Both the position numbers and the translations under genes were made by a program. The notes beneath the pieces were generated by a model that saw only the letters and a list, made by a program, of their open reading frames with translations, did no database searches and was not told where the DNA came from. Source: Takakia lepidozioides (taxonomy: Eukaryota > Plantae > Bryophyta). Taken from it: 64,000 nucleotides of DNA. Shown piece by piece: positions 16,323-53,778 of the stretch (position 1 is the first letter of the stretch; every line of letters starts with the position of its first letter). The stretch lies in assembly GCA_030704615.1 (NCBI GenBank), contig CM060733.1, forward strand, positions 29,822,001 to 29,886,000. The letters run 5' to 3'.

Positions 16323-17006
16323 TGTATGGACTAGTGACTGCCATAGTGGGCAGCATAGTGGCAGCCTAGTGACTGACTAGTTGTAGCCTAGTGGTTGGAC
16401 TAGTGGCTGGACTAGTGGTATACTAATGTGTGGTGTGCACATGTGTTGTGTGGTTTAAGACAGCGATGTAGTTGTGTAGCGATATGTATGCGCACGACAG
16501 CTGTCAAGTTATTTTACCACTAGTATGAAACTAGCTAGGAAATAGCTAGTTTTTACATATTGACATTTGGGATTGGCCCAAGTGTCAATCCAGGGGTCAA
16601 GGCAGATTTAGGCCCTGGAGTGGTTATCTTCACGGCAAGCGCGGGAGGCTCATCTTTCTCGAGTTGAGCCTCACCGCGCCTAGCTATGGCGCCGTAGTGT
16701 GGATTCCCCATGGCGTGGGGTGCACTTGGCTTGACTTGTATTTGAGTGATGATGTTATATATGCATGAGTTTATGCTTCAACTTTGTGAGCTCGCATGAG
16801 CTTGTGCTTGTATTCTTCTTCTTTATCATTGTATGGACTAGTGACTGCCATAGTGGGCAGCATAGTGGCAGCCTAGTGACTGACTAGTTGTAGCCTAGTG
16901 GTTGGACTAGTGGCTGGACTAGTGGTGGACTAGTGTGTGGTGTACACATGTGTTGTGTGGTTTTGGACAACGATGTAGTTGTGTAGCGATATGTATGCGC
17001 ACGACA
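16323..17006 (+). repeat. B1-A2-B2 terminal repeat block
   Basis: PPT AGGGGGGCG 16312-16320; B1 16323-16499; GC spacer; A2 16502-16828; B2 16830-17006. Confidence 0.92.
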
Positions 17007-17750
17007 AACAAGAAAAATGTTGCGACCACCCCACTGCTGGTGGTCGCAGCTATTAAAACAAAATACAAATTGTGCGACCACCAGTAGCGGTGGTCGCAAC
17101 TGTTTTTTTTGTTTTTTTAAATGGTGCGACCACCCCCTGCTGGTTGTCGCACCTATTTTAAAAAACAAATGTTGAGACCACCCCCCTGCTGGTGGTCGCA
17201 ACTGTTATAAAAAAAAATAAAAAAAATCTGCAACTACCTCCCTGCTGGTGGTCACAACTATTAAAAAAAAATTAAAATTATGCGACCACCCCTGCAGGTG
17301 GTCGCACCTATTTTTGAAAAATAAAAATATTGCGACCACCACCTGCTGGTGGTCGCACCCAATTTTTAAAAAAGTAAAAATGTGCGACCACCCTCTGCTT
17401 GTGGTCGCACCTATTAAAAAATAAGTAAAAATGTGCGACCACCCCTTTCTGGTGGTCGCACCTATTTTTATTTTTTTTAAATTGTGCGACTAACTGTTGC
17501 TGACGGTCGCATGATTGACAATATAAATCATAATATATGAATTTTATAGAGAAATAATGAAGTCCACGTAATGAGGCCACATCGGTTGCCTCGTCGGTTC
17601 TCATAGTAAATAGTCAATAGTAACGTAAAAAAATAAACATAATTATGTACAATAACATCCGTTTTGGACGTGACGTGACGCACGTCCATCGCTGACGTCG
17701 GACGTGACGCTGACGCGTCAACGCCACGTCACGTCCAAATTTGCAACTAG
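17007..17750. repeat. Palindromic array, right part, ending in a 15-bp inverted repeat plus CTAG (possible Helitron-like terminus)
   Basis: About 10 units at 50-52 bp period. TTTGGACGTGACGTG (17663-17677) pairs with CACGTCACGTCCAAA (17725-17739); CTAG at 17747-17750. Confidence 0.75.
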
Positions 17751-21376: not shown

Positions 21377-23343
21377 ATTTTCCAGTATGCGACCAAAATG
21401 CTTCAGCCGAAGCATCCATGGCCGAAATATATGCGGTAATATAGGATCCTCTCTCCCAAGGAAAAGGCAGGTATAGGTCATCATTCAAGATGCGCATGTC
21501 ATACATTGCCAAAAAGAGAAAGATCGAACTAAACGAGCGCGGAGGACATTTCGACAGACCTGTCGAGGACCGGGACATTTCATACTTGCATTGTCGATCA
21601 GCATTGCGGCGGGTCGATCGGGTGCCATATCAGTCTGTGCGAGTTCCTGATACCTACGGGAATTTTCCCCTAGTCTTCCCCTCCAGCTTTTCTATTTTAT
21701 TTTCATTTAGCTTTTAAGTACCTAAAAATCTAAAATGTACTTTCCCTGCGACTCAGTTTCCCTCTTATAAAGGCCATAGAGGGAATCGTATTACAAGGGA
21801 AAGTCTAACTCTCCCTCCAATTTCCCCTCTGGAAAACATCCAACAAGGGATTCTTCAAGGGAATTGTACTTCCCCTTTTTCAGGGCTCTCTAATGAGGGG
21901 AAACGTCTGTCATTCCCTCTGTGCCATAGTGGGGAAGTCTCAAAAGCTCCTTGTGGCCGGGGGGAGACACCAAGGTCACACCTTATGTTCAATTTGGATG
22001 TGGCTAATGCTCTAACCCGCGGGTTTTGTGTGTTCTTGTGATTCAAGTCTGATCATGTGCAATGTTTCATCTATATACTTTGAAGGGGGGTATATGGTAT
22101 AATTTTTGACATTTCATTCATGTTAATATCTCGTGATGTCAAAAACCATTTCTAAGATCGATCATTAGGCTCGCATCATCTGTGCTGATCTCTCATCCTG
22201 TAACATGTTTCAGTTGGGCAGATCATCGAGCCAGTGCATGTTTCTCGGGTATTAAGTTGTTGAATAGGCTTCGTGCAATGGTGTGATTGAGAGACCTTGC
22301 TAGTATTGTGAGATGGTTTCTCTATGATGATATTGTCGTCCAGGTAATAGGAAGGCCAAGACAAGAAAGTAACAGTAGCTCAATAGTATTAATAACAGCC
22401 AGAATGTAAGTTTATATTTTGCTTTCATGTCATATATATCAATAGAACCATCAGCATAGTAATCCTGGAGAGGTATGTCAGATCAGATTTTTGCCTAAAG
22501 GGCACCGATGGCATGTTTTCAGCTTTTTAGCAAAATGAGGCAATCCTCTTAGCGTGCTACAGATTCACTTGCATGGGATGGATTGGGGCAACTGCACCGC
22601 TCCCATCCTCTCTTCGGTCGACGTACACATACCCAGACCAATACTGAGAGAATGTCATCTTTGTTTTTTTTTTGTTTTTTTTTTTGTTTTTTCTTTAGCT
22701 GAAAGGGGATAGTGGCCCTTATTAATTTTATGGAGAATTATTGAAGGGAGAAAAATGTTCTTTTGGATTTCTATAATATGAAACTTAAACATGAGACCCA
22801 ATTTGAATATTAGCAGTTAGAGCACGGGAAGCACGCAGAAAGATTCCATAAATAAGCAGATACATAAATAATCGTATTTCAAGTAGTTGAATACTCCACA
22901 TTGACATTAATCAATAGTTTTTCTTTAATTCATTTAAAAAAGTTTATTATTAGTATGCTATGCAACAAATATCTAGTATGAGTAATTAAATGACAATATA
23001 TTCCACCTAATTATTAAAGATATTTTGCATAATCTACTTAAGGTACCGGATCATGACGGAAGACAGTTACAGTGTTCACTTCAGCACTACTATATGCATT
23101 TTAACCGGGAGGACAAGAATCTGTATTCAGCAATGGTTTTATTATGCACACTCAATACCTTGAGAAGTTGCAGTCTTCACATACTGAAAGTCACGGGAAT
23201 GTCACGAAGATATTCCACGGTCAGACAACTCTCTAAGCAACGGCACCAGCTGAGGATATGTAAAGTTTTTCCCGGGACCCCCTCAACGTTCCATGCAGCG
23301 AAGCCTCACTGTTTCCAGGATCGTCGTTCGTCTGACTGAACAG

Positions 23344-23622
23344 TCCTACCAACAAAATAATAATCCCATATCGAATGCCCATAAACCGTGCACTCTCGCG
23401 CTATAAAGCCACCGTGCAGTGCTACTACCCACGGTGGTCCCTGAGATCCGAGTGGATCCTGCGCTACTACCTACCGGGGCGGTACTAAGGTCCGAGTGGA
23501 TACTGTGCGATTCCCGGCAACAATTCTCTTTGGAATTGGGTCCTTATAGAACCCACCTACGAAACCCAACCAGCACTTTCTCGCTATTGCTCACATTTAC
23601 GCTTGCGAGAGCGCTGGACTAG
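23344..23622 (+). mobile_element. Short non-autonomous Helitron-like element carrying a USE/TATA small-RNA cassette
   Basis: 5' TCCTACCAACAAAATAATA; USE-like ATCCCATATCG 23363-23373; TATAAA at 23402; 3' hairpin CGCT-n-AGCG then CTAG|T at 23619-23623. Confidence 0.6.
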
Positions 23623-23689
23623 TCGTAGTGCCTAAAGAAAATGGAGCCCCGAGAACACAAATCGATTTCTATCAAAAATCTATTTCTAT

Positions 23690-24130
23690 CAAATGTGGCT
23701 TGCGACGGTCTTACTATTCGAGTGGGTTCCCGTAGGAGGTTCACCGCGGCATAAAGCCATTTCTGTCTTTGCCTCACTAATGGAACAGATGCATGCAATC
23801 TGAAGAATTTCAACCAATAATTTAGGCCATCCTACTAAGAAACTAATAATCCCATATCGAACGCCCCGCACTTGCAGCTGTAAATGAACCGCCACGCAGC
23901 GCGTTCAAATGTGGCCTGCAACGGTGCGTCAGGCTACCAACAAAATAATAATCCCGAATGGATCCACCGCCTGATGAGGCTCTTTTGGACACGGGACTCA
24001 GCCACGAAACCCAACCTGCACATTCCCTCGAATACTCATCGTTGCCCTTTACGCTGCCACATGAGGGCGAGACAGTAATAGTGGTAAGAAGAACGCGCAA
24101 CTGCGACAGTGTACATACGAGAACAGAGAC
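23690..24130 (+). repeat. Clustered partial copies of the same cassette family
   Basis: RNA core 23695-23744; USE 23849-23859 with truncated core at 23911; internally deleted copy from 23934. Confidence 0.7.
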
Positions 24131-24402
24131 GCAGGTATGACTGTCACACTGTTCACTATAATTGACAGACCATGACTTGCTATTAAAATAGATCGTATTT
24201 CGTGGGCATTGATATATACACTAACTCATGAATGCAGTGACTGGTTTAGAAATCGGGCTCTTGTTTGCTACGTTTTGATGATTATTTAAGACCATATTCC
24301 CCTATGCTTATTCTGGGAGAGAGTGCTGGTGACGCCGACAATATTATATCGAATGCGCGCACTTGCGCGCTATATATAAAGCCCAACGCCGCGCTATCAA
24401 AT

Positions 24403-24488
24403 GTGGCTTGCAGCGGTCTTCAGGCCCGAGTGGGTCCCGATCTACAGTAAGGTCACACCCCATTGGTGATGCAGTGGGCAACGTTTTT
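24403..24488 (+). ncRNA. Candidate Pol III small structured RNA (unknown family)
   Basis: TATA at 24371; GTGGCTT/AGGTCAC closing stem; GCCC-GAGT-GGGT hairpin; CCCATTG/CAGTGGG hairpin; TTTTT 24484-24488. USE only partial. Confidence 0.45.
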
Positions 24489-26391
24489 GTAAGAGGTAAA
24501 GCCCTCGCCCTTGGAACAGGGGTCGAAAATCCAGGAAAGTCCAAGGGCGAGGGCTTTACCTTTCGTAAGAACGAAGCTGCCCGTTTTCGAGACTGCCCGA
24601 TTTTCCTCCGCGTTGCCACTAGGGTTTCATTGTCACGTCATTGTAGCTCACTGCCCAAGTTTGAAAATTGTCTGCCCAATATTTAAAGAATAATAGATCC
24701 ATAACGTATGGGGGGACAGATTCCATAATCTGGGATTACGGCCCCCGTCCCAGTGCAAAATCCTGTAATCAAGTGCCAGGGAAAATTCCTGTCAGGGAAG
24801 CCCTAATTTTAACAAAGCCAAAAAATCTGAAGGTTGCGGTTATTTGATTTTTTTGCCTCAGAATTTTGTGTGGCCTCGTCATAATGAGGCCGCACGGTGC
24901 AGAGGGGACAGCGACCTGCCAGCGGGCCCCGCTACATTAAGACGATACCTATTGCCCTGTTTCTCTTATATATTGAAAAAACGTCAAATTCTCAGCAAGG
25001 TGGAGGTAGTGGTCTGGTGGTGCGTCGACGATGATTTAGCGAAGCAAGCCTCGGGTTCCATTCCCCAAACACAGCTCCTAGGGTTTGGCGCTTATTATAG
25101 CTACGTCCATGGAGGTAGTTTGTAACTACTCTCATGCAGGGGTTAGTTCAGCCTTGGTTTTGCAACTACCCGCATGGAGGTAGTTGTAAATTTCATATGC
25201 CAAAAAAGTTCCAAGTCCTCGGCATGAAGGTAGGTATGAAGGTAGGTTTGCTCCTATGTTAATGAGATGGTGGCCCCATCACCTGACCAACCTCATTACG
25301 ACAAGGCCACACAAAATTCTGAGCCTATTTTTTTGATATCAGGCGGTTACGGATGTTTCACTTTAACTTTGTATTCACATCCTCCGATTCCGGAGTTTTG
25401 GAGCTTTCTTATTTTTGTTATCCCGCCAATTAACAATAAATATAGAATTTAAGCCTATGCGGTTATGGACAAATGGGCTTTCTCTCTAGATGGCATCCGG
25501 CGGTTCAGTATCCGGTTATCAAACAAGTCATGGTTTACTTTAATGATGTAAAATAAATCAAAAATTAAAATCTAATGTAAAAATACTAATGAAAAATAAT
25601 AAAGTTATTTGTATCACAGTTTCATTAGGAGCTGAACCATAATCTGACCTAAATTATATCACAATTGAACATATTTGAGGTGTTCATCAACGTTATTCAA
25701 TCCCGTTATTCAATGGCCACATCGTTTATGTAACCATATAATCTGTTAGTAACCTCTGGTTAAAGGGAGGCTATAAAGGTTCATAAACTGCCTCTTGTGG
25801 GCCACTAGTTCCAGATCAAAACAAATATAAAAGAAAAACAAAACCACATGTTCTCAACCGAATCCGATTATATGAACATTTCATATCCGGCGGTTCCTAA
25901 TGGAGGCGGATATTTAAATTTCTGACCTCCGGCAGATCCACATATATATATCCGGGTTGGGATCTGCCGGGGGTTTGAGGCAGAATCAAATATCCGCCCA
26001 ACACTGGTTTTTACGTATAGGGGGAGTCCCCGCCACGAGGGTGTTCCGTTGTTTGAGGGTTCGTAGCCCGAGGGCGGAGCCCGAGGGTGTACTACCCGAA
26101 TACCAAGATATACCCGAGGGGTGGGGACTCCCGCTGCGTAAAGCCCTTTGTTTCTGCCTGGGGAGGTGCCCTACAAATACAAAGGCCCCCACCCACAGAA
26201 ACCCAACTTGGCTCGTCCACATGCATACGCAATATTAAAGAAAGACTTGCTCGGTAACAGCTCTTCCTGGTAATTGTACACTTGATTACATCCAATCACC
26301 GTGGGATACTTTGAACCCTTGACCACCTAGGTTATGCACAGGCAAGGCACAAACACCCAACCACTGGGTTACGTGCTCGAATGCATCAGGG

Positions 26392-26510
26392 TACCAACAA
26401 AATAATAATCCCGAGTGGATCCATGACCACCTCTTTTTCGAATGGGTTCCTCACGGGATTGAGCCACGAAACCCAACCTCCACATTCTCACAAATACTCA
26501 TAGTTGCCCA
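26392..26510 (+). repeat. Internally deleted copy of the cassette family
   Basis: TACCAACAAAATAATAATCCCGAGTGGATCC...GAAACCCAACC. Confidence 0.7.
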
Positions 26511-28559
26511 CGTTGATCATCCCCAACTCTCTTTCTGAGATCACGTGTGCATTTTACTGAACATACCTTCATCCTGAAGACCCCACTGTTGCTGTGATAC
26601 TAAAAGAGGGTGCCATGTCAAGCTTATTGTCTAACAACATTAGTAAACACTTCAAATACCAAGGCTACAGCAGTGGAAGAGAAAATAACCTTGGCTAGCT
26701 AATTTATTCCGTTTCTGTTTTGTTTCTACATGGTACTGTTTCCTGTTTCAGCTTGCCTCAATCCATCCCATGGAAGTGAATGTCATGCGCGCCTAGAGGA
26801 TTGCCTCATTTTGCTGAACACCTCCCAGTGGTGCCCTTTAGGCAAAAATCTGATTTGACATACGTCTGCGGGATTTCCACGTTAGTTGCTTGTACATGTG
26901 GCTATGGTGCCATTTCTTGTATTGCCCGGACTTGCAATTTCCGTACCTGTACTACTATGCTGCTGGTTCTATTGATATATATGACATGAAAGCAAAATAT
27001 AAACTTACATTCTGGCTATTAATACTATTGAGCTACTGTCACTTTCTTGCCTTGGCCTTCCTGCTACCGAACCGTGAACTACACTACCATCATAGAGAAA
27101 CCATCTCTCAGCACTCGCAAGCTCTCTCAATGACACCATTTCACACCATTGCACGAAGCCTCTTCAGTAACTTTATCCAAGAAAAGAGAGCTTCCCTCAC
27201 GTAGTATGTGTTAATTTATCTTTACCATGGCAGCTGTCAACCTAGCCATCAGCTATTAAACACCTTTAATAGAAGTAGGTGAAGTAATTCATTAATTTAG
27301 GCTGCAGTTTAGTAGATTCTTGATTTCATGGCTTTCACCACCCACTCTTGATGAGGGTTTGTAAACCCTTAACTTCCCAAGCTGAATTTTTTCACTCCCA
27401 AAAATTACCACCCCTTGGAACTACCGGGAGGCTAACCACCTACCACCATTCATCCAAAACAAATTGACCGTACACATACATGTCTACTTGGCCTTTACAC
27501 CATCTCCCCAAATTTTAGGAATTTCCACCGTGGAGTTTGAGAGATTATATTGTTTTTTTGGGGAGAATATATATATAGATATATCTTTTGGTTTGAAAAA
27601 AATCTTTATTTGCTTTGACCAAGCATGTTGAGGGCTTTTGAATTTTCCAAAAGGGTTACCCCACACCAACATTTTACTGCATATGTTGCTTTGTATGCGT
27701 TTCGGTGAGGGTTGACATGTCCATCCCTAGCAAGCACATTCAAGCCTAAAGCTTTCCTCCAAACCATGTCATTCCCAAAACCATAATTACACAAATCCCT
27801 GGTGAGGGCTGTCTTATAATGCCCATAAACATCAAGAAAATTTTCAAGCGGATCTATTGGTGAAAACCAAAATTCAAATAGGTGGAGTAGCACCGAACAA
27901 TTTTGGCATCAGTGGCGTGGTATGCTTCAATGGCCCGATGAAGGGGGCCACGTTTCTAGTAAACTCCCCTCCACCCAATAATTTTTTGACCCATTTCTCT
28001 TTAGAAAAATATGGAGGTCGCATGCCTCCTCCAAATGGCACACAATAAATTGGAGCAAGTGGGCGACCTCATGCGCTATAAATGCTCAGAAGGAATGAAT
28101 GTAAAAAAAGTTCATCTGCAAAAGTTAGGATGGTCCTCAAGATAGCGCGACCTAAAACGGGTCGCGTAGAAAGTTAAGGGTTAATTAGGCTGTTGACTTT
28201 TAGCTTGATAAATAGTGGGAACACACTAGACATAGGATGGGAGTTGAATGCGCACTTGCCAGCCTGCCGGTACGGTGGCGGGGGCTTGCCGGAGCCGGGA
28301 CGCCCTTGGCGGAGCCCGCAGTCAAATCCCCACCCCCGGGCCCTGCGCCGTGCCCTTATTGCTTGTATCATAGTACAAAAGATAAAAATTCTGAGGGGTT
28401 GTAAGAAAGCGGCGGGTAGCTTGGTGGCCGGGTGTGTTGACCATTATTGCGGGTTTGATGGGATCAAACCCGCCCATGGCGCTATGGAAATTGTATGTGA
28501 AAGGATTTGACTAAGGTACCATCAGTTTTTTGCATGTCCAAAAAATTTGTCCCTCAAGC

Positions 28560-28830
28560 GGATCTCCGCTCCCCTGTTTCCAATCGCCGCTCCCCTGTGT
28601 CCACCACTCCCCTGTGTTACTGCTCCCCGCCGCTCCCCTGTTATTGCTCCCCTGTTACTACTCTCGGCTCCCTTGTGTAGCTATTGCTCCCCTGTTTTAC
28701 TGCTTCGCCGCTCCAATAATAGGGGAGCGGAGGAATGGGGAGCAATAACAGGGGAGCAGGGGAGCGGGGAGCAATAACAGGGGAGAGGAAGAGCTGGGAA
28801 CATGGGATCGGCGGAGCGGGAACAGGGAAG
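28560..28830. repeat. Foldback-type inverted array (GCTCCCCTGTT / AACAGGGGAGC)
   Basis: Motif orientation flips near 28718. Confidence 0.7.
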
Positions 28831-28980
28831 TGCCGCAATGGGAGCATGGATTGTGGGACTCACAGCCAAACTTTTGCATAAGGTAAGCATAAGGGAGGTG
28901 AAGGACATCGAGGCACTTTTCGTGCATTTTTCGTCAAAAATGTAGGGACCCAGCCGACGGTTTGGTTACAAGCGTGCCTT

Positions 28981-31284
28981 TTGAGTCAAGCACGGTCCAA
29001 GAAACACACAGTATGCAATCGATGCTACAAGCGTGGTCACTGGGCCAAAGGTTGTGGTGTTCCCTACGACGAGGTCCTCAAACTTTGTGCCCAACAAGTC
29101 AATTTGCTTGAGGATGATAGCAACGATGACTATGATGATTCCAACTCTGAAATCATCGAAGCTGCACTAGTAGCGGTGGATTAACTAAATGAGAAGGAGG
29201 AGGTCCTTTCGGCAGAGTATGCTGAGAATGTATGATTCATTGACTTTGGCGCTAGTATGCATGTTATTGGCAACTCAAGCCAATTCATGATATTGTAGCA
29301 ACTGGAAGGTCATACCGTGTGAGGTCAGCCGGTGGGATGCACATAATGTTCAAGGCAAGGATCACACCAAAATGAGGCTCAATGGATCAATAAAGAAGAT
29401 CTCAAATGTGTGTTTGGTATGACGATAAACTTGTTTTCTGTGGGGGCCATGACTCATAGTGGTCATTTGGCTGTATTTCATTCTAGGAAATGTTTGTTCC
29501 TAGATACAAAGGATCTCAGTAGAGTCATTGCTCAAGGAATCAGAGATAAAGCAAATGGCTTTTATAAGCTTGACACCATGCTAACAAACTCCGCTACAAA
29601 CAGATTTTGCTTGATAGAGAATCAATATTTGAAGCAAACACATGTGACACTGAAATTACTTAGGATACACTCAAGACAGTTAGACTCTAGGATAGGCGAT
29701 TGGGCAACTTGAACTTTCATGGATTACATGCTCTCACCGGCCTTAATAGAGCTGAGGGAGCACCTCGCTTGCCATTGCTTTTAGAAACATGCAAGGGACG
29801 TCTACTTGGAAGACAGTAGAGGGAACAATTTCCAAAGCAAACAGAGCACAGGGTCGAGAATATACTTGAATTAATTCACACTAACTTATGTGGACCACTC
29901 CAAGTTTCTTCTTTAACCGGGTCAACGTATTTATGGCCATTACAGACGACTTTAGTCGCTACACATAGATCTATTTCGTCAAGAAGAAAGACAAAGGTTT
30001 GCAAGCATTCAAGAAATTTCGACTCATGATTGAAATTGCCACAGAGAAGAAAGTGAAGTACATTTGGACAAATCGAGGTGGTGAATTCATGTCAAGTGAA
30101 ATTACCACCTATCTTGAGTCTACAAACTCGGCAGCTTACACAGCCACACACTCCACAACAAAACGGTGTCTCGGGACGTAAGAACAAGACTCTCCTTGAG
30201 AGGGCAAGGAGCATGCTACTGGAGACCGGTCTTCCAAAAAGTCTTTGGTTAGAGGCAGTTAATACAGCTGCCTACCTGATAAATGTAAGTCCACCAGCTA
30301 CGAATTTTGGCATAACACCATTCCATGAATTATCGGGTACAAAGCCTAATATAGGGCACCTTCGTTTATTTGGTAGTACTTCATTTGTTCATGTACTTGA
30401 CAAACAGTATAGGGATCATAAGTTTGATTCTATGTCCATTGAGTGCATTCTCGTTGGGTATGATATTGAGACTAAGGGGTATAGATTGTTTAACCCAACA
30501 ACAAGAAAGGTATTCAAAGTAGGGAGGTTAAGTTTATAGAGAAACTACCTGCTTATGAAGATCAGTCTGCTATTCGGATGCAAACTCACCGGTCCTGATC
30601 AATCCAATGTCGAGTCGCTGCAAGCTGGCCCTCCCGTTGCTCTAAGTGATCATCTTCCCGAACCAGTCTCTCCTCCTAGTAGAGATCTTCACGTTGACCT
30701 ACTGTGTGAGCTCTGAGCTATTGTTTGAAACAAGCTCCTAGAGCTTGGTATGCCAAGATAGACACATATCTTAAGTGATAGGTCTTGATAGGTCTTATGT
30801 AGATTATAACCTCTATTTTCTCAAGGAAAATGGGCTGATAGTGTTATTCATCCTCTATGTCAACGACCTACTTCTAACAGGCAGCCATACAACAAAGATA
30901 ACCTGGCTACCCGTGGGACCAACTCAAGCTTCAGTATGACATGACTGATCAAGTAGGCTTTATTCAAGGGTTTACCTTGCAGCTGAGTTCCTTAATCTTG
31001 ATGAGGGCATAATGATCGCTCAGAGAGGGTATGTTAGACAGATGCTTGAGGAATTTGGTTTCTCAAACTGCAATCCTCACTCTGTGCCTATGATTGAAAA
31101 TTTAAAGTTAACGCTGGATATGGGCACACTTCCCTCTGATGAGACCAAATATCGAAGGAAAGTGGGCAAGCCGGTTTATTTGATGAACACTAGACCTGAT
31201 TTGGTGTTCCTTGTTGGAGTAGTGAATCGGTACTTAGAAATCCCACAGAACTCTCAAAACACAGTAATAAGGTCCTGGCATTGA
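28981..31284 (+). mobile_element. Ty1/Copia remnant, heavily degenerate, related to the 18-21 kb element
   Basis: CNRCYKRGHWAKGC; TPQQNGVS; WLEAVNTAAYLIN; YLMNTRPDL. Confidence 0.88.
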
Positions 31285-32084
31285 GATCACATGATGAATT
31301 TTTAACATTATTTTTCAATTCAAACCGTATGGAAGCCGCATAGCATGGAGTGACCCGTCAATCACATGCCCTGTATGAGAGATGAAGATACAACTGACCA
31401 TCTCGTGCATGTTGCATGCATGCTCGCTCTTCAATGTCACATGATAAGAGACAGTGTAACTATATACTGCCCATTGCGTATCAGGTAAAGTTCCTCGTTC
31501 ATTGAGGCGGACGCCAGAGATTACAAAAATACAAGGGTAGATCTAATATATGAAATGTAATGTAATTATGTAACGAAAACGAAGCAAGAAACAAGAAAAC
31601 GCGAACAAAAAACAACGAGGGAGCCAGAAGAAGCCCAAAAGCTGCAACTACTACTCAAGGGTCAAGCTTCGTACATGTAAGCTGCCAAGCGTTTATGATC
31701 CAAGACTTCTGTGAGAGATTGGGTTTCACGGAATAGACATTTGGATCTCCCACGGATCCCAAGACTCATAGTAAAGAGGGCAATAAATGAAGAAGTGTTC
31801 TTCAGTTTCGATACACCAGTTGTGCTCGGTGCATGCTAGTAGAGAAGGAAATTTTGATCTTATGATGTCCGTGGAAAGAGTGATCTAGGAGAAGGTGGTG
31901 GATATCTGAGATCGGGTCCTTTATGTGCACGTGAAAAGCGCTAGTGATGTCATCAACCACAGGGTAATTACCTTGAGAATAAACTTGTGAATATATCGAC
32001 TGGAATAAAGTTGTACATATCGATAGACCTGATGGACCCCATGATTGCTGTAGTAGATTGATGGTAAGAAGCATGGATCTAAAT

Positions 32085-32490
32085 ACCTAGTTGGAGGATA
32101 CATAGATCCATCCTGCTTGTGCATTTGCAACATGAAGTCAGCAAGTTTTTGAACAAAGCCTTTGATATCTGCTTCTTCAGAGAGGTCTTCGATGGTTTTC
32201 TCAATACCATAACAAAAATGCTTACACCAGGCACTGAAGCAGTACGTGCCCAAGCCTCCGTTGCTTTGCTACGATGCCTACCACCTTTCTCGACATTGGC
32301 GACCTCTGCTTCATCCAACTTACCCCACCTATCAGCACCCACACGTCCCTTAGTACGCCCCTGGATATTCGCAACAAGATTTCCTCCACGGAACCAAAAA
32401 CCAAAGAAGAATCGACAGGTGAATCTTCAAAAACTTTGTTCGCATCAACCAGGGAACTGAAGTTCTTTGCAGGCTCTACATTTGACAATC
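32085..32490 (-). pseudogene. Crypton/DUF3504-type tyrosine recombinase, N-terminal fragment
   Basis: SKATEAWART..AWC...LADFMLQMHKQDGSMYPPT resembles the L..F....K.DG..YPP.T motif; catalytic part not seen. Confidence 0.5.
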
Positions 32491-32700
32491 TAGATTCATG
32501 ATCATATATTTACCCTTGAACCTTCAGATTGCAAAGCCTCAATATCTCCAGCCGTTACGTTCACAAAACCGTATCATGTCCCTGGGAATTCGAACCTGTG
32601 ACAAGCTTGGCGGAGCGTTGTAGGGTTTAGCTCTATCCGACGGCTGTCTTGGGAGAAGACGGAGCTGTCACGTGAAGAAGCAGGTGGTGGCAGTTCTAAG

Positions 32701-33600
32701 TGATCAGGATAAAGGCTACATATGAAAAAGATAGAGAAGTGTACATAGAGGAGATTAGGGATCTCTCTTCTTTTTGCTTTTCTCTAGACGATAGGATAGG
32801 CTCCTTGTAGATATTGATTGTGCGAGGAGATAGAATGACATGATCGAGAAAATGCATACGATCGGTGAAGAAAAAAAGATACAGAAACAGACGCATGGTG
32901 TGGCGGATGGGAGGACTGGATGTCTTCCAGTACCATGTGCATGTGCAGCTGCTAGAAATGTGTGATAGTTTAGTTGATGCTTGTGGTCGCTGGAATTGGA
33001 GATAGTTGTTTATATGAAGCACTGGGTTGCAGCCAGCTGTGTTGGAATACGAGCACGATCATGCCTGTCAAGAGCGGCGATGATCTGTAAATTCGTTCTT
33101 TTGCAAGGAATTGAGCTCTTGGGCTCTTTGCTAGTCTGCTCATGATGGAACTGTTTGCAGGATGCAGAAAAGTGAAGTTGAAATTCCAAAGTTACAGGCG
33201 ATACAGGGCAGAAAGAAAGTGAACGTACCTTGAATCACGGTATGCCAGAAATAGAACGATCTCACGGTGAAGTAAGAAATTCAGTTCGACTGGACAAGAA
33301 AAGAAGAAGAAAGGCATATCGTGAGAAAGAGAAATTAGCATAGAGGAATGTAACAATTTGGTATCAGAGCAGATTTCGAGCTCTAGGATTTGTGGTTTAT
33401 GAGCCAGCTGACATTCGGCCCTTGAAGCTCGTTGCTTCAGTGGGATACAATCTCCAAAGATAGAAGTAATATATCTCCAAGGTCGATGGAGGGAGAGACA
33501 AGCCATACACAGGTCGCGGCTAAGAAAACATAGGGGAATGTTGTGCCAGAAGAACTTATCACCATGAGAGCAACAGATTTGGCATCTGCACCAAATTTGT
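32701..33600 (+). mobile_element. LTR plus tRNA-iMet PBS of a truncated LTR retrotransposon
   Basis: ...TAACA at 33355 then TGGTATCAGAGC 33359-33370; LTR start uncertain. Confidence 0.6.
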
Positions 33601-33874
33601 CTCGATTAATATTTTGAGTCCTACCAACAAATAATAATCCCTAATCAAATGTTCTACAGGATGAAAGCTGAACCTACACTAAAACTCCATCCTCTATTAT
33701 TCTACCGTCGTACACCCTAAATCGAACAGAAGCTCTGGCATATTATTACTTCAATGGGTGTAATCAGGTGTACAATCGTCAGGAATAGTTGTTACGGAGC
33801 GTGTTTTTCTTTACTACTGCATATGCATGTGTCCAGGTTGGTTTTTGTGGGTGGGGCCCTAAGAGGTCCGTTCC

Positions 33875-33955
33875 AAAAATATCCTACCCTGTGAAGCGTG
33901 AGGTAGGGTGACCCTACGACGTACCCAGTCGGGTCTGAATATCGCGGCAGGTCAC
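33875..33955 (-). ncRNA. Candidate Pol III small structured RNA (same family)
   Basis: USE 34025-34015; 27-nt spacer; TATAAA at 33987; GTGACC/GGTCAC stem; ACCC-GACT-GGGT; CCTACC/GGTAGG; T5. Confidence 0.5.
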
Positions 33956-36226
33956 AACTAACTGTGTGGCATGGCGCTTGATTTATAGCGCGCAAGTGCG
34001 GGGCTCCGGGCATTCGATATGGGATTATTAGTTTCTTCGTAGCACGTCGAAATTAAATTCTTGCTTGCAATTTTTTAGATTGGGGGTTCCGTCTTTGACG
34101 CAATCGCATATCAAACTGAAAGCGATTTGAGTGTCCGCTGTTGCATTTCTACGAACGCAGCCGTAAATCCAAAATGTGAACTCTTTCAGAATTTTCTTCA
34201 CCATTTTCAACTCCTCCAGGGCTTCTTACGTTCATCTAAGTTCAGCCAGAAGACGGCCGGCTTCATTTACAGAGCCGTCACCATAGATTTGTAATGCATG
34301 ATCTGCAGTACTTGCTACCGGATTGTGCTTTATCGAACAAAACATTTTAGTTTTACTTCTGTAAAGATTACCAGCGCATGATGACACCAGGATGAAACCA
34401 CACTGTAAGCCAAGACTATCACCTAAAGGAACGAACTGAGGAACACCCAAACCCTGAAAGGCTGAAAGCCCGTGAAAAAGCCAGAACATTAACCAGGTCG
34501 TCTACAGTGAATCAATAAATATAAGCTGAAACTTGGAAGCAGTGCCCTCCTTGGAATGCCTCCATTTGGGGAGAAAATGAAACGTTATGGTGGGGGGGGC
34601 GATGGGGGCCTTCCCATCCTGAACGAAGGTCGGACTAAAAGCTTGCAGAATTTGGGCGAATAACCATTCATTAGTCCTGTGCTCTCCCTTGCCTCAAGAC
34701 TCCTTGAATCTGCTAAAGATGGAATAATGAGTCTGATGTCCAACATTTCCCTCTAGGGGCCCAGACTTTCCAAGCTTCTTAATGCGCTTAGAAAAAATCA
34801 GGCCCATCAAAGCAGATATGGATAGGATTTCTCTACGCAGTTACACCTCGTTCTTTATATGTTAGGCTTCTATAAGATTGTTTCAAACAACAGGTTAAAT
34901 TCCCAAATAATAATTAAGAAGGCTGGCTAAAGGTCTCCTAGTTGTTACTTTTTAATTGAATGTTCTGTCTCTATATAGAACATTTTACAAAGATGAAAAT
35001 TTTCAATCATATATAAAGTGTTATGGAGGTTAGTTGAAGGTGAAATACACAAATGAATAATTGTTTTCAGGACTTCATTTGCAAGCGCTTTCTCATATTT
35101 TGAGTGAAACTGGCCTGAAACTGGTATGGAATTACCCCATTTCACTTTATTGAGCTGACCAGAAAGAGGAGCCTGCAGTGTGAAAGTAAGCATGGCGCAC
35201 AGAGGTTTATTACAGCACTGGAGAAGGAATGAGAAAGGAATATGCAGAAGTTCGTACTCAGTGCCCATTAGCTAGCACAACAGGTCAGGTTTGCATGAAG
35301 CAGGGCCAGAATACGAAGGCCACCAGAGCCCTGAGGATTCCGGACTGGCGCCAATATTCGATACAAACTTGCGGATGATTGCCTTCGTCTCTTGGGTAAG
35401 CTTGGGAGAGGGGTGCCAAATTGCAGTCAGATACCAAAGAGAGGTGAGAAGGATCTTAATTTCGATAGAGGACTCTGCTGGGTATAGAGAGGCGCCTTAA
35501 CTCGATCGTGCGTAAGCTCACCTTTAATTTTGGTACAACGCTTGGGAAATTCTCTCATCTCAGTCGAAATTGGGCGACCTAGTGGTGATCTGGAGGGGAA
35601 CATTTAAAACTGTGAATGTGGTCTTGTATCACCATCTTCCTTGATCGAAGATTAAAGTCTCCAGGGTGATCATGTCATGGCCAACGCAAGAGGATAAGCG
35701 TGGTGACTCCTTGGACCCCGACTTACAGGCTTCCGATATCTATAAACTAAATAGCAAGGAAGTGCATTGAACGTTCTATTTGTCGCCAAGACTGTCTCAT
35801 AAGATTGGGTTCTACCTGAGCAGAATTCTGCGTGCAGCATAATTACACATATTATTACGGATGTCATCATTATCAAACCAAGCGCAGATGCAACCAATCG
35901 AACCGGCCAGCTTTACGTTGCTTGGAAGCCCCTTGAACAGTGTAAAGTACAGTGTATTGCGAACAAAATGTACAAGGTGAAGCGGGGTCGTCAAAGCCTC
36001 GATATAATTAGCCTCTAAGCATAGTTGGGCTGCCATGTGTGTCTTTTCCAGCCCTTGGTAGGGCACGGTTGTCATATGAAATGAGTTATGGGTTCTTCGC
36101 TGGGCGCAATGGGTTGGACACAAAAAGAATTTACATATATAGAATCCTTCGAAATCAAGGCAGTACGTGGACGAGAATGCTGTCCAGGTTGGGTTCTGTG
36201 GGTGGGGCCCCAAGAGGCCCCGTTCC

Positions 36227-36315
36227 AAAAACATCAAGTACCCATAATCAACAAATGGGGAGTGACCTTACTATAGATCGGGACCCACTCGGGCCTGAAG
36301 ACCGCTGCAGGCCAC
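36227..36315 (-). ncRNA. Candidate Pol III small structured RNA (same family)
   Basis: USE 36385-36375; 27-nt spacer; TATATATAAA at 36347; core nearly identical to the 24403 copy; different 3' hairpin; T5. Confidence 0.5.
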
Positions 36316-37013
36316 ATTATAAAGCGCGGCGTGGCGCTTTATATATAGCGCGCAAGTGCGCGACTGCGGGCATTCGATATGGGATTATAAGTTTCTTCGT
36401 AGGATGGTCTAATTTATTGCTTGCAATTCATCAGATTGCATGCAACTGGTCTATTATGTGTAGGGGAAGGCCCCTGCCCGAGGCTGGCAGCCCTAAAATC
36501 GTGGAATGCCAGCGGGCAGGGGCCTTCCCGAACGTGAAGAACGGCTCAGAATTTTTTTCCAATCTGCAGAATGTTCCTCCAATTTGAGCGGGAGTATTTC
36601 GAGGCATATTATGAGGGACCCTGAAAAATTCTGGGCAGTTCTACAGGAATCGGTCATGCTTGCAAGCAAGTTCTCGGTCTATTGAACATGCGCAATAAAA
36701 CCGTTCCTGAATAACATTATTGTTGTGCGGAAATTAAAGGTTGCGCGGGCTCTACAAAATAGTCTACTGGTAGATTATTGTGTGTGCCGTAGTTTCTTCG
36801 TATACATACGTTCTCGATCTTTTTACATTTTTCTGGACGTGATCCGTGTAGCATTGTTTTGTTAGCTTATGTGCTCTCTCTCATTGCTTATCCAACTAAC
36901 CGTCATAAATATCTGTTCAAGTATTAATGCAGGCTTATATGAGTATAAGAACAGGAAGAAAGTCGTGAAAGGACCTTTGGCCTTTTCATATGAGCTATTC
37001 TGACTTTGGGCCG

Positions 37014-37619: not shown

Positions 37620-40600
37620 TGTGGAAGGTACCTATATACCTTGTCATGGGATGAACGTATCCACCGTTCTGTGGAATATTCTGTATATATATTCAAGGAA
37701 TGTTGCACAGTTCTTTAGTTGAAAGTAAATCTTATGACGTACAATCGCCAACATGGTATCAGAGCGTCCAGCTTGAAAATAGTTTCTTTTCTAGTGAGCT
37801 ATATGAATGAGTGTCTTGAAAGTGAGCACTGCTCCTTTCTTCTTTTCACTTTCCATAAAGTAAATTTTTTGTTGTGAGCATTGTTCCTTCAAACTAAGTA
37901 TCTAAAAGAATAGTCATCATGGCAGAAGCACAGGGGAGTCATGGTAGCATGTCAATTGGGGAAGCAAACAAGTTGGTTGGTATCAGTAACTACTACATAT
38001 GGCAGCTGAAGATGAAAGTCATATTGAGGAGAGGATGTATGGGATCTTACCGAGAACCATATTCAGCCTACAAATTTTTCAGTAGTCATGGTTGGAACGC
38101 AGTACTCTGAGCAGTCGATGAAAAAAACAAATAATCTTGCTTTGTCATGCAACTATCAGTAGCAGATAGTCTACTACGATTTGTGTCAACTTTCACCGAT
38201 CCAGCACTAGCATGGGATGGCTTGCGTCGCAAATTCGCATCTGGCAATCAGTCACATCTACTCATGTTGACGAACCAACTTCATTCGCTCAAGATGCCAG
38301 AAGGAGGATCTATGGAAGAGTACATCAACAAAGCAACAGATCTGAAGAACAAGTTGTTGTCCTTAGGAGAGAATGTCCCAGCTAGGTTTTCTGTCAGCTC
38401 ATACCCAATGATTTGTCTGCAATGAGTTATGAGGGTGTTGTTCAAACCCTGAGTAATCTAGACATTGTACTTACATTTGATCAGTTAATAGTCAAAACTG
38501 TTAACTGAAGCAGCACACCAGCCTCCAGGAGCAGCGAACATCTTGAGTAGCTAGGTGATGACGAAGCCTTGGCAGCCCATTTCAACAGAGCTGCAAGATT
38601 TCAATCAAGAGTTTTCAATGGTGGACAGTTGCAAGGTCACTTCCCGAATCCAAACAGCTTCCGTGCACGTGGATTTTCTCGAGGAAGGAACTTACGTTTT
38701 AGAGGGAAAATAGACTTATTTGGGAGAAGCTTCGGACGAGCTCGAATTATTTGTTACAACTGCGGCCAAGCGGGTCATTGCTGCAGAGTGCATTGTCCAG
38801 CCTAATAGGCTAGCTTAATTTAATGTAGAAAGAGGTCAGCCTAATCATACTTCATATGCCAACGCAATACAGAACCTTGATGTAGTACTGTCAGAAATCT
38901 CAGGTTACGTTAACTCTCCTCAGCCATGGTATATGGATAGTGGAGCCACAGCTCATGTCACTGGTTCTAGAGAAAGTGTAAGTCGGCTTGGAGAAAGTAG
39001 TGCAGAGAGGAACATCAGAACTGCTGGAGGAGAAAATCACAGCATCCAAGGTGTTGGTACCTCAACCGTGAAAACTGATTCTGACGAAATAAACATGACA
39101 AATGTTCTGCCGACCTTGAAAAAGAGTCTGATATCAATAGATATTGTCACCGATACTAGTAACATTGTTATTTTCTCCAATACACACTGTTGGATTTTAG
39201 ACCATCTTGACAACAGGAGCATTATTGCTGTAGGCTACAGAGATCCAATTAACATACTTTACAAATTTGAACCTCATCATCAGATCAATAGTGTAGATCT
39301 AGGAAGCACCGGAGATTTGTGGCATAGAAGATTTGGTTATCTTAGTCATTCTAGTCTCAGCCATTTGTCCAAACACAACAGGGTCTTGGGCTTACCAAAA
39401 ATAAAAACGTTGAAGATAGTATGCGTGCGAGTGAGTAAGTGTGTGAACCGGAAAGCGACCAAGGTGTGGGGAGCTATTCCGGACTGTCATCTACCAAAGG
39501 GAATTTCCACTGAGCCCGACAAGTCGAGGTCGAGTGGGAGTGTGAGGGGGACCGTTATGCCCCGGTGAGCAACCGAAGCTCCGAGTTGGCCCGGTGGCCG
39601 GTTTGGGAGTTAGGCGCGCGCATCAAGGCGAGTAACTATGACTTGAAGGGGAGTTTACCGAAGTGAGGTGCGCGACAGGTCCTAGAGAAAGTGTAAGTCA
39701 GCTTGGAGAAAGTAGTGCAGAGAGGAACATCAGAACTGCTGGAGGAGAAAATCACAGCATCCAAGGTGTTGGTACCTTAACCGTGAAAACTGATTCTGGC
39801 AAAATAAACATGACAAATGTTCTGTATGTGCCGACCTTGAAAAAAAGTATCAGTAGGGGCTATCACTAATACTAGTAACATTGTTATTTTCTTCAATACA
39901 CACTGTTGGATTTTAGACAATCTTGACAACATGAGCATTATAGTTGTAGGCTACAGAGATCCAATTAACAGACTTTACAAATTTGAGCCTCATCATCAGA
40001 TCAATATTGTAGATCTAGGAAACACCGGAGATTTGTGGCATAGAAGATTTGGTCACCTTAGTCACTCTAGTCTCAGCCATTTGTCCAAACACAACAGGGT
40101 CTTGGGCTTACCGAAAATAGAAACGTTGAAGATAGTATGCGAGAGCTGCCTTGCCGGCCGACAGCACAGAGAACGTTTTCCACGCCACTCGAATAATCGG
40201 GCATCTACACCTGCAGAACTTATTCATTCTGATTTGGTAGGACCCCTGCTAACTCCATCATTAAGTGGATCCAGATATTTCGTGGTCTTCACCGATGACT
40301 ACTCCCAAAAAAGCTGGATCTATTTTATGCGAAGCAAGGCCGAGACTTTTACAAAATTCAAGATTTTCAAATAACTGATTGAAGGATAAACGAGTAAGAA
40401 GATAAAGACAATCAAAACCGATCGAGGAGATGAATTACGTCAACAAAATTTAACACTTATTGCACTGAACATGGAATTAGAAGATAATTAACACAAGCAT
40501 TGACACCGCAACAAAATGGTGTGGCAGAATTAAGAAATAGGACGGTGGTGGAACGTGCATGCTCATTGGCAGCTAACAGCTCGCTCCCGGGGTTTTTATG

Positions 40601-44983: not shown

Positions 44984-46771
44984 ATAAAGAGGCATGTGGC
45001 TTACTAGGCAAGTTTTCCCTCTACAATAGGTGGACTGGTACATAGGGTCTGGCCCGGTTATCAACCTGGGTATTAAAGATCCGACCCGGCTTTCTGCTTC
45101 CACCAATCCCACCAGGAATTATGAGCACAAAGCCTCTAAAACATAGACATACACCTATCAGGCAAAATGGGGAGGTCTATCTGTCATCCTCTCTTTAGCT
45201 TGCTCCCTTTGACACGCATTCCCCCCCCCCCAATAGATGGCCTCATTTATACGGTGTATTGGAACTCAATGTGAGTGATGGAAGCTTGGGAAACAACACT
45301 TGAGAGTGCCCAAGCTCAAAGCCGTGTGGTCATACTCAACATTAGGATCGACTAATGAACGACTGATGGAGTAAATTTGAGAAAAATGAACAAGCCCGTG
45401 CACCCGAACCAGGCTACCCCACTCACACTCAAGCCAAAAACATTGATACACAATATTCAAAGAATCCAAACATGAATGGGATAGAGCCTCTTCTGTTTCT
45501 CTTCCTCATCTCTAAGAGCTTTAAAAGAGGAAATTATCATAATATTTATGTTGGTAAGGTAAAAAGATGAGAAAATGAAGGTGAGTTGTTGCCTCACCAC
45601 AGTTCAAATTCCTTTGGTATTAAGCAAACCAACCACCTAAGCAAGAAACTATGAATGGTTATAAACTCTAAAGAAGGAAACTATACGACTGAAGATTTAA
45701 TCTTGGTGCAAAAATGGTGAATGGGTGTTCAAGTCACACTATTATCACACTATTACCTGCCGCAGACTATGCATGTTTTCCATGTTGTCTAAGCCACTCT
45801 TCATGTCTCTCCCCCTGCACATCCTTTCTCTTTCTCTTGGGTACGGGCAAACAACATCTTATCTTATGAGGATATTCTTTCTCCCGCAATAGGCTCCGAG
45901 AGGACTAAGTTAGCTGCAAGACCTAAATCACCCACTACAATTTGAATTTGAGAGGAGGAGGGAATGGTGTTGGCAAAGCAGTGTACAATAATACCTTGAC
46001 ACAAGTTCCTTCCCTTCCACTTTCTTCCCTCTCACTTATAAGTAGCTCCAATTCGCTATATCACCTTGCTACCCACACCCTCCAGATACTACAAAGACGG
46101 CACCAATCCTCATCGTATCGATGGCATGCCAAAGTGAAGCGAAGAGGTTTGAGAAGGTTTGAGAGTGAAGTGCGGCGTAAAATACTCCTAAACGGTCGTT
46201 TTTCAACACTGTATTCTCGACCCTTTTGAGATGTTGGGAAATTTTGTGTAGGGTAAAGCCTCGGCACAAGGCCTTCGAGGCCAGGTAATGGCCGAGGCCT
46301 CAGGCTTTACCATGCGTAAAGAAGCAAATACATACTACGTTGCTACCCGGCGCAATCTGATTGGGCTTGAAATATCCCATATCGATTGCCCATATTCAGG
46401 ACCCTGTGGAGGATATAAACCAGGGTGAGCTTTGTTAGAGTGGTGGGTGGAGTTATGGATGATTACATCATCCCAGTTTTCACGGAGTACCTTATATTTG
46501 GAAGAGTACGTTACACCCAAATATAACATATTCCCCAAAATATAAGGTACTTACCCTATACACCCAAATATAACATACTCCCCAAAATATAAGGTACTTA
46601 CCCTAAAATTTGTCCAAATAAGCGTACTCAAACTACAAAGGAAAAAAATGATGAGGTTCTTTACGCATATTTAAAGATGTAGCTTGGCAATACCGGATTC
46701 ATCACTTATCATCTGTTTATTGTCCAAACTGCGCAAATACTAACCGGGGTATGACCGGTGCATACTAACGC

Positions 46772-47205
46772 GGAAATTCCAAAACGAAAGAAGAACTTGT
46801 CGCCAAGGGGAGACTCGTGTGCGCAGCGGTCCCTCCTTTTTTTTGCAGCTGTAAATCAGACAGGCTGTGAATACGCCTTACTGTGGTGACCAGTGACATG
46901 GCCAAGTGGTTGGAGCTTTACAATGGAGTTCTCATGGTGCGCGTGCTTCTAAGTTGGTTTCCAAACATACCATGGGAGCGGCAGCCACTTCAAGCCATTC
47001 GTGATGTGTGTGACCCATACTTGAACCTCTTCAGGAACATTATCCCCCCTTTTCGACGCCCTTGATTTTAGTCGGATGCTAGCCTTCATGGTTTTAGGGG
47101 TGTTCACTTCAATTTTGAATACCACTGTGTAAGGATGAGCGAGTCTCTGATACTCAAGGGCTTACACGGAATTCGGGTTTGGCTTCTGCGGTGGTCAGTG
47201 ATCAG
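46772..47205 (+). pseudogene. YLMG1/YGGT pseudogene (3' half plus 3' UTR), inverted relative to the intact gene
   Basis: AKWLELYNGVLMVRVLLSWFPNIPWERQPL...; small deletions and frameshifts versus 49540-49999. Confidence 0.9.
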
Positions 47206-47354
47206 TATCAGGCTGATGAAAGTTGTCATTGAGTTTTCAGGCAGTCCTATTTGGCATTTCAGGTGTAATGTGACATGTGTAGCTAATTCAGTCATAGAAC
47301 AAATTTGATAGAATATGTAGACAATGGAAGCAAACATCCATTGACTGAACATAG

Positions 47355-49614: not shown

Positions 49615-50508
49615 TCATCCTTGCACAGTGGTATTCAAAATTGAAGTCAACACCCCCAGAACCATGAAGGCTAGCATCGGACTAAGATCAAGGGCGTTGA
49701 AAAGAGGGGGGATAATGTTCCTGAAGAGGTTCAAGTATGGGTCACACATATCACGAATGGCTTGAAGTGGCTGCCGCTCCCATGGTATGTTTGGAAACCA
49801 ACTTAGAAGCACGCGCACCATGAGAACTCCACTGTAAAGCTCCAACCACTTGGCCATGCCACTGGCCACCACAGTAAGAGGCGTATTCACAGCCCCTGTC
49901 TGACTTACAGCTGCAAAAAAGAGAGGGGCCGCTGCGCACATGAGTCTCCCCTTTAAGACGGCAACAAGTTCCATCTCTTCTTTCGTCTTCGAATTTCCTG
50001 GGAGTCTTGTGGTAGTTAGGGTTTCTCCCAAGACCCTTGCAGCTCGCACCAGTGCTTCAGAGATGATGGCTACCGCCACCATGGTTCTCGAGAGAGCTGC
50101 TGCAGCGGCAGTAACGAATCCATCACCAGTCAAAGCCACTCTAGGGTTCGGATGTGGGGCCTCCACCATGGCCTGCAGGGGACTAGCCCTGCAAGTAGTC
50201 AAATGCCTTCTACTGGGAAGCTTACTGGTCAATAGTCCTAGAGACAATAATCGTGGAGAAGAAGCCATAAGAGAAGATGATAGGATTCCCTTTGAGATAC
50301 AAGAAATGCACGCGCAGGATAGCAAACAGCACAATTGGGGACGTCGATAGGCCTCAAAGCTGCTTCTCACAGGCATTATCCCCTCCATTCTAAAAGACAT
50401 GGTGGAGGCAGATAGGAAAGGCATAATTTTCCCCGTTATCAAATCGAAAGGAGGAAAACAGGCGCAAGCATCAAGAGACAGAGGAAGGGCGGAATCGAAG
50501 AGTATCAC
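49615..50508 (-). CDS. YLMG1: YGGT family protein, YlmG homolog 1 (plastid-targeted), intronless; true start probably a downstream ATG (50424 or 50268)
   Basis: Open frame with Ser/Ala/Leu-rich transit-peptide-like N-terminus and C-terminal YGGT domain (YSGVLMVRVLLSWFPNIPW...DPYLNLFRNIIPP...LDLSP). Confidence 0.9.
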   Translation of the reverse strand: MILFDSALPLSLDACACFPPFDLITGKIMPFLSASTMSFRMEGIMPVRSSFEAYRRPQLCCLLSCACISCISKGILSSSLMASSPRLLSLGLLTSKLPSRRHLTTCRASPLQAMVEAPHPNPRVALTGDGFVTAAAAALSRTMVAVAIISEALVRAARVLGETLTTTRLPGNSKTKEEMELVAVLKGRLMCAAAPLFFAAVSQTGAVNTPLTVVASGMAKWLELYSGVLMVRVLLSWFPNIPWERQPLQAIRDMCDPYLNLFRNIIPPLFNALDLSPMLAFMVLGVLTSILNTTVQG

Positions 50509-53494: not shown

Positions 53495-53589
53495 ATTCAA
53501 TCATGGGGGCTCACAGATCTTTACAGTACATCATATGTACAAATAATAAAGTACATAATATGTACAGTGTGCAGAACATCGTATAGCAT

Positions 53590-53778
53590 CATTGTTCTCG
53601 TATGTACACTTTTGCGGTTGAGCCTTCTTCTAACTCACTATCACTGTCTAGCACTGTGGCAGCGTAAATGTGGGCAACTGCGAGTATCCGGGAAAATGTG
53701 CAGGTTGGGTGATCCATTCCAGAAAAAGCCTCATCAAGCGGTCATGGATCCACTCGGGATTATTATTTTAGGTTAGCT
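53590..53778 (-). repeat. Internally deleted copy of the cassette family
   Basis: Reverse complement is homologous to 23934-24130. Confidence 0.7.

Follow-up and report, generated by a model that had tools for sequence, protein, structure and literature searches.

A promoter-bearing repeat family in the window

We analyzed a 64,000-nt window of Takakia lepidozioides contig CM060733.1, in which short cassettes carry an upstream sequence element (USE) and a TATA box ahead of a small body. Copies were counted within this window and delimited by self-BLAST together with an nhmmer profile. The cassettes form one repeat family, with eight clear copies and three weak fragments that share 75–92% identity and are spread over both strands from 23.3 to 53.8 kb. 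Family homology reaches approximately 60–85 nt 5' of the USE and >100 nt 3' of the T-run that follows the body, so that what is repeated extends beyond the RNA and takes in the promoter. Many of the copies are truncated, doubled or recombined.

The repeat unit is approximately 0.35–0.4 kb long and begins with a pre-USE segment (CCTACNAANAAANTNATAAT). The USE is followed by AAYGCCC, a GC-rich spacer, the TATA box and a leader of approximately 21 nt. The body comprises an irregular hairpin of 48–54 nt (48 nt in copy c34, 54 nt in copies c36 and c24), closed by GUGRCC/GGUCAC and bearing CGAnUGG at its tip, and a 3' part in which a second hairpin of unalignable sequence precedes the T-run. Past the T-run lie a GC-rich palindrome, the block CCACRRAAACCCAACCTGSAC and a tail of approximately 100 nt. 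The body motif GGYCCGAGTGGRTMC, searched with ≤2 mismatches, gave seven matches against 0.38 expected, and the CGAnTGG core was unchanged in every copy.

The USE sequence ATCCCATATCG occurs exactly five times, at 23363(+), 23849(+), 34025(-), 36385(-) and 46374(+). With ≤1 mismatch, six matches were found compared with 0.76 expected, and none of 100 shuffles reached six. ATCCCATATCG agrees with the plant USE consensus RTCCCACATCG at 10 of 11 positions. A script measured gaps of 28 nt (23363, copy c23a), 27 nt (36385, c36), 27 nt (34025, c34) and 29 nt (46374, unit K) between the last base of the USE and the T that opens TATAWA, a box present in these four USE units and in c24; at the TATA place of the 23849 unit (c23b) there is only TGTAAATGA. 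In the units at 23363, 36385, 34025 and 24371 (c24), GTGR stands 32 nt past the initial T of the TATA box, and transcription would start near this GTG, approximately 30 nt after TATA. The first run of four or more T (T4) is at offsets 116, 108 and 113 in c36, c34 and c24, giving predicted RNAs of 89, 81 and 86 nt, respectively; c23a lacks a T4 run. An exact USE is kept even by units with a broken TATA box (c23b) or a broken body (c23a).

A first-pass annotation of this DNA had described a dispersed cassette family, with the USE 27–28 nt before TATA at 23363, 34025(-) and 36385(-) and GTG(G/A) exactly 32 nt from the first T of TATA in four copies. Both distances were reproduced by script (28, 27 and 27 nt for the former). 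The family is real, but the units at 23849 and 46374 and several promoter-less fragments had been omitted. As read from the DNA, the promoter anatomy, which comprises the USE, the TATA distance, the start offset and a run of five T (T5), is real and non-random.

In Arabidopsis, the USE–TATA spacing is 23–24 bp in promoters of RNA polymerase III (Pol III) and 32–34 bp in those of RNA polymerase II (Pol II) (PMC8287931), and in moss U6 genes it is 25 bp (bioRxiv 10.1101/2023.10.25.562971). The cassette gap of 27–29 nt is wider than the published Pol III spacings and narrower than those for Pol II, the compared values coming from other species. Counting conventions for this spacing presumably differ by approximately 2 nt, which we take from AtU6-26 as a lead only. 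The gap is thus placed as intermediate and appears to lean toward the Pol III value, and T5 at +81 to +89 would fit a Pol III terminator.

Conservation and predicted RNA structure

Segment identity was expressed as the mean pairwise value among four promoter-bearing copies. It was 1.00 for the USE, 0.93 for the next 7 nt and 0.84 for the preceding 18 nt, followed by 0.81 for the ACCC (ACCCAACC) block and 0.75 for the T-run. The spacer, TATA box and leader gave 0.54–0.61, the long hairpin 0.38 and the second hairpin 0.34. Between c36 and c34 alone, identity was 0.63 for the body and 0.40 for the second hairpin. Across eight aligned copies, the only invariant columns were CGA-TGG-T-C and two T of the T-run. 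In real genes of the small nuclear RNA (snRNA) type, conservation of the RNA far exceeds that of the promoter. Among the aligned copies the cassettes reverse this pattern, the predicted RNA being less conserved than the promoter.

Folding of the three intact bodies (36315-, 24403+ and 33955-) gave a closing stem together with two hairpins, one with a GAGU loop and the other variable. Minimum free energy (MFE) z-scores of these bodies were -0.65 to -1.33, not significant against shuffles, and those of rearranged copies were approximately 0. RNAalifold on four bodies returned 11 pairs with a covariation term of -1.06, and none of these 11 pairs held a compensatory double change. Only two full bodies in the window are independent, too few for a formal covariation test, because c36 is almost identical to c24.

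The first-pass annotation had proposed an 80–90-nt body with a closing stem, an inner stem, a conserved hairpin and a variable 3' hairpin, matching no RNA that it recognized. The outline stands, with T5 in three copies and lengths of 81–89 nt. The inner stem is less secure: it is only 4 bp long, its register shifts between c36 and c34, and the MFE fold of c34 prefers another hairpin. The lack of a known match was borne out in Rfam 15, which gave no match at gathering score over the whole window and nothing relevant at E ≤10 in the 23–37 kb region or for isolated c36 and c34.

Copies, variants and palindromes

The most intact copy, c36 (36161–36456, minus strand), has its USE at 36375–36385 and its TATA box at 36337–36347. 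Its predicted RNA (36227–36315) would end in T5 and is followed by a 6-bp GC hairpin and the ACCCAACC block. On the same strand, c34 (33745–34095) is a full copy with the USE at 34015–34025 and TATA at 33981–33987; after its predicted RNA (33875–33955, again with T5) come a hairpin, the ACCC block and a tail of approximately 100 nt. In c24 (24331–24505, plus strand), the USE has decayed to ATATTATATCG (24341–24351), TATA lies at 24371–24381, and the predicted RNA (24403–24488, T5) is followed by a long palindrome. Over 112 nt c24 and c36 are 92% identical, yet both flanks differ, which indicates recombination or conversion.

Three further copies lie on the plus strand upstream of c24. In c23a (23336–23656; USE 23363–23373, TATA 23402–23408), the CCGAGTGGAT core is doubled, and the 3' part keeps the ACCC block and tail. 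The weaker copy f23686 (23686–23761; nhmmer profile E 1e-4) consists of leader, long hairpin and a decayed T-run, has no promoter, and stands head-to-tail directly ahead of c23b (23774–24127). The latter has an exact USE at 23849–23859 and a TATA box decayed to the sequence given above. A copy of the pre-USE segment interrupts its body after CAGG and the second hairpin is absent, whereas the ACCC block and tail are kept. A head-to-tail tendency is apparent, with c23a, f23686, c23b and c24 within 1.2 kb and c36 and c34 2.4 kb apart.

The rearranged arrangement of c23b, which we call Form B, recurs in s26 (26382–26514, plus strand) and s53 (53591–53770, minus strand). It thus stands at three separate sites (23925, 26382 and 53770), at two of which USE and TATA are unrecognizable: s26 has neither in recognizable form, and s53 is without a promoter, its tail being 77% identical to that of c23b over 192 nt. 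In copy d26 (approximately 26120–26294, plus strand), the core of the body has decayed, and a palindrome, the ACCC block and a tail of the c34 type are present. Beside c34, the weak fragment J (33617–33651, plus strand) is an inverted pre-USE segment with a decayed USE.

Unit K (46374–46480, plus strand), a weaker member that shares the promoter only, has the family's 18-nt USE block, preceded by GCAATCTGAT as in c36, and a TATA box at 46414. Its body is an unrelated short hairpin (GGAUGAU..AUCAUCC) followed by T4. K is thus a copy of the promoter that carries another payload. Form B at three sites and the K promoter with its new body are, on this record, variants that were copied.

Long palindromes lie at 24482–24573, 46241–46325 and 36448–36545, with arms of up to 34 nt and fold z-scores of -5 to -11. 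The last is GC-rich and lies upstream of c36, and that at 46241–46325 is just upstream of K. The three look homologous by eye, a likeness with no scored alignment behind it. A further palindrome of the GC-rich family is at approximately 26140–26190. The palindromes always stand directly after the T-run of a unit or directly before the promoter of the next; in c36, c34 and c23a the palindrome has collapsed to approximately 6 bp.

Searches for known elements and transcripts

ARAGORN found no tRNA, and a scan for a hammerhead core (CUGANGA, helix II, GAAA) found none in any cassette. Within the Form B copy c23b, 23975–24020 (plus strand) carries CUGAUGA, a 4-bp GGCU/AGCC helix and ACGAAAC. This stretch resembles a hammerhead core, but the helix geometry fails: there are two extra nucleotides before GAAA, and helices I and III are missing. 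It may be the relic of a hammerhead module. A fold like that of the hepatitis delta virus (HDV) ribozyme, checked by eye, did not fit.

Other element classes were considered and rejected. For a short interspersed nuclear element (SINE) or other tRNA-derived unit, there was no tRNA-like fold, convincing B box, poly(A) tail or target-site duplication; only an A-box-like core was seen, CCGAGTGG, which we presume to resemble an A box and regard as a lead only. For a long terminal repeat (LTR) element, a terminal-repeat retrotransposon in miniature or a retrozyme, the exact primer-binding sites (PBS) in the window are parts of other elements, occupy the other strand and in no case abut a cassette. 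The inverted pre-USE copy near c34, a candidate terminal inverted repeat, is merely the family fragment J. The idea that the tail after the ACCC block is the upstream region of the next unit was rejected as well, as local alignments of the two did not exceed shuffles (z <1.3). Profile ends at 334–338 in five copies could suggest 5' truncation with a common 3' end; this pattern is not claimed, because the choice of input range and the decayed upstream remnants in d26 and s26 confound it.

Contigs from two sequencing runs labelled as the same species, of uncertain kind, matched only the palindrome at 36486–36594 within 33700–36600 and none lay on c34 or c36, a comparison that is uninformative for short RNAs. 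Contigs of one run, X1, match 36486–36594 at approximately 87–90%, and this palindrome is therefore repeated or expressed elsewhere in the species. A metagenome scan with USE-N22-37-TATAWA gave 120 loci, every one a chance match; none was homologous to the cassettes or had an snRNA motif downstream. In the literature on the USE variant and on snRNA-type promoters in transposons, we found no description of such a plant unit.

Genomic setting

The surroundings consist of Gypsy and Copia remains with PBS of LTR elements. Copia gag, integrase and reverse transcriptase lie at 18.1–21.4 kb, and more Copia pieces are found at 30 kb and 38.9–40.4 kb. Exact tRNA-iMet PBS (TGGTATCAGAGC) at 33359, 37754 and 52664 (plus strand) mark LTR elements. 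Two of these elements are 90% identical over 850 nt (37739–38587 vs 52649–53495). The shared identity begins only 15 nt before the PBS, and the 5' LTRs of both are therefore missing or unrelated.

Part of an open reading frame (ORF) of the YGGT family (49615–50508, minus strand; Pfam E 9e-19) is duplicated in inverted orientation approximately 3 kb away, near unit K (46772–47215 vs 49998–49539, 91%). Another ORF, at 59930–60703 (minus strand), has a DUF7869 domain (E 2e-31). A search for encoding contigs of two window proteins found no record. Tandem-repeat blocks, marked by many internal self-comparison matches, occupy 17006–17511, 54150–56030 and 56460–58370.

Interpretation of the cassettes

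From the repeat membership, motif spacing and conservation pattern observed here, the reading we favor, at a probability of roughly 45%, is that the cassettes are a duplicating, probably mobile or transposon-derived element that bears a promoter and is likely to yield a short Pol III transcript. Each intact unit would present a plant snRNA-type (SNAPc-dependent) promoter that fires a short transcript near the GTG, 32 nt past TATA. If the polymerase were Pol III, as the spacing leans, transcription would stop at T5 and the transcript would measure 81–89 nt. The unit would have been duplicated, recombined and left to decay within this retrotransposon-rich stretch; its transcription, its polymerase and its mode of spread are what we infer. 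What is preserved and propagated is the promoter block and two short DNA motifs, not the sequence or fold of the RNA. Since promoter and short motifs are kept and the RNA is not, the cassettes look like a promoter-bearing duplicating element, unlike a conserved cellular small-RNA gene.

Several findings weigh against this reading. Terminal repeats, target-site duplications, empty sites and a linked transposase or reverse transcriptase were looked for in the window and none was found. A similar picture would be expected from a broken-up tandem gene array. The low conservation of the body is exaggerated by two rearranged copies. Moreover, the invariant CGAnTGG points to a constraint that is possibly on the RNA, and the second hairpin and the palindrome after the T-run keep pairing despite differing sequences; this kept pairing is the sole hint of structural selection, which might act on DNA or on RNA. 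Finally, c36, c24 and c34 jointly retain USE or TATA, start offset, fold outline and T5, as working genes do.

The last of these points are also what would be expected of a lineage-specific family of Pol III genes with type 3 promoters, arranged in small clusters with many pseudogenes, whose RNA of 81–89 nt would perform a cellular function and consist of a long GAGU-looped hairpin at the 5' end, another hairpin and a U-tail. Such a family, less probable than the reading we favor, is a serious rival to it. The joint integrity of promoter, start, fold outline and T5 in c36, c24 and c34, the core shared by all copies, the second hairpin that pairs with differing sequences and the spacing nearer the Pol III value all speak for it; no known family matches, and the gene family would therefore be new. 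Against it, no part of the unit is less conserved than the RNA, the fold z-scores fall short of significance and none of the pairs found is compensatory. Form B, which lacks the second hairpin, stands at several places with an unrecognizable promoter at two of three, the setting is a transposon graveyard, and the same-species contigs, whose run kind is uncertain, include none on c34 or c36. The sequence observation of the first-pass annotation itself was confirmed. Its interpretation as unknown Pol III small RNAs retains the promoter anatomy and the absence of an Rfam match in its favor, but it is opposed by the decaying repeat, the poorly conserved RNA and the lack of support from fold or covariation; "unknown Pol III small RNA genes" is possible, though not the best-supported reading.

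A less probable alternative is that the cassettes are inert debris, an old tandem array of an ancestral snRNA-like gene that was split by retrotransposon insertions and inversions and is now neither transcribed nor mobile. The head-to-tail units (c23a, f23686, c23b and c24 in 1.2 kb; c36 and c34 in 2.4 kb), the decay of USE, TATA or T-run in several of them and the nested LTR elements between copies agree with this, but an exact 11/11 USE in five units despite 20–40% divergence elsewhere is unlike neutral decay, and debris explains poorly why copies stand on both strands and why rearranged variants occur at distant sites. Far less credible is a Pol II gene of the Sm class, snRNA-like or spliced-leader-like, with an RNA of approximately 125 nt in which the T-run would act as Sm site, the GC hairpin would form the terminal stem at the 3' end and the ACCCAACC block would be the 3' box. 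Although c34 has AUAUUUUUGG between its hairpins, the A before the U-run, and hence the canonical RAU4-6GR Sm site, is found only in that copy. The conserved block stands directly after the 3' hairpin, at the place of the plant snRNA 3' box, but does not contain the plant 3'-box motif AGTNNAA; the long hairpin retains GUARGG on its 3' side in the manner of spliced-leader RNAs, but the would-be leader exon is only approximately 75% conserved between copies. In addition, the USE–TATA gap is 6–7 nt below the Pol II spacing, the 3' hairpin ranges from 6 bp to >25 bp, and Rfam has no snRNA or spliced-leader match. We give slightly less credence still to the cassette as cargo of a mini-Helitron spread by rolling circle. 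GC-rich hairpins are constant after the T-run and c23a ends near CTAG after a weak hairpin, but CTAG occurs only in that copy and elsewhere homology runs past the corresponding point (c23b vs s53, to 24125/53593). The ACCCAACC block after the hairpins is conserved and is therefore not flank, and there is no common 5' TC or A|T insertion site.

The promoter-bearing duplicating element thus remains the reading that we prefer, and a bolder form of it, to which we assign only a small chance, would be a plant repeat or retroelement that spreads an upstream SNAPc-type Pol III promoter with a fast-evolving structured leader. Type 3 promoters sit upstream of the RNA and therefore should not travel with a retro-copied transcript. 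Conceivably, read-through of T5 in head-to-tail units could yield terminally redundant RNAs from which reverse transcription would restore the promoter. Alternatively, SNAPc could drive arrays of variable small RNAs in heterochromatin, like those of nematode Piwi-interacting RNAs (piRNAs). Either route, if true, would mean that land plants use the snRNA transcription machinery in a way not described before.

A multi-copy element bearing a type 3 promoter would, if true, be a new way for plant repeats to recruit SNAPc and Pol III and would add one more to the very few transposon promoters that depend on snRNA factors. Such units would also turn up falsely in searches that use the USE to find telomerase RNA or other small RNAs in bryophyte-grade genomes, and they might serve as compact native Pol III promoters for guide-RNA expression.

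Comparison with known systems

Plant type 3 genes of the snRNA type (U6, U3, 7SL, MRP and telomerase RNA; the rules of Waibel and Filipowicz) combine the USE RTCCCACATCG with a TATA box (PMC8287931, PMC6765143). The cassettes resemble them in a USE that agrees at 10 of 11 positions, a TATA box at a fixed distance, a putative start approximately 30 nt past TATA and a T-run that would serve as terminator. They differ in the intermediate gap of 27–29 nt and in a predicted RNA that matches none of those families; moreover, the cassette promoter and flanks belong to a multi-copy repeat in which the RNA is less conserved than the promoter.

In trypanosomatids, the SNAP50/TBP-bound promoter Pr77 is common to long interspersed nuclear elements and SINE-like retroelements (PMC8190864). 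Like Pr77, the cassettes place a small conserved promoter module of the snRNA-factor type on many repeats with differing bodies. Pr77, however, is internal and is also an HDV-like ribozyme, whereas the cassette promoter lies upstream of the start. Being internal, Pr77 retrotransposes with its RNA, which an upstream promoter such as that of the cassettes should not do.

The type I piRNA genes of C. elegans are SNAPc-dependent Pol II units that produce 21-nt RNAs from thousands of loci (PMC7884074). By analogy only, the cassettes recall them: the units are tiny and clustered in a heterochromatic setting, and each joins a conserved upstream motif of its own to a variable body. With SINEs, the cassettes share short length, multiple copies and probable transcription by Pol III, and they are set apart from SINEs by a promoter that is external.

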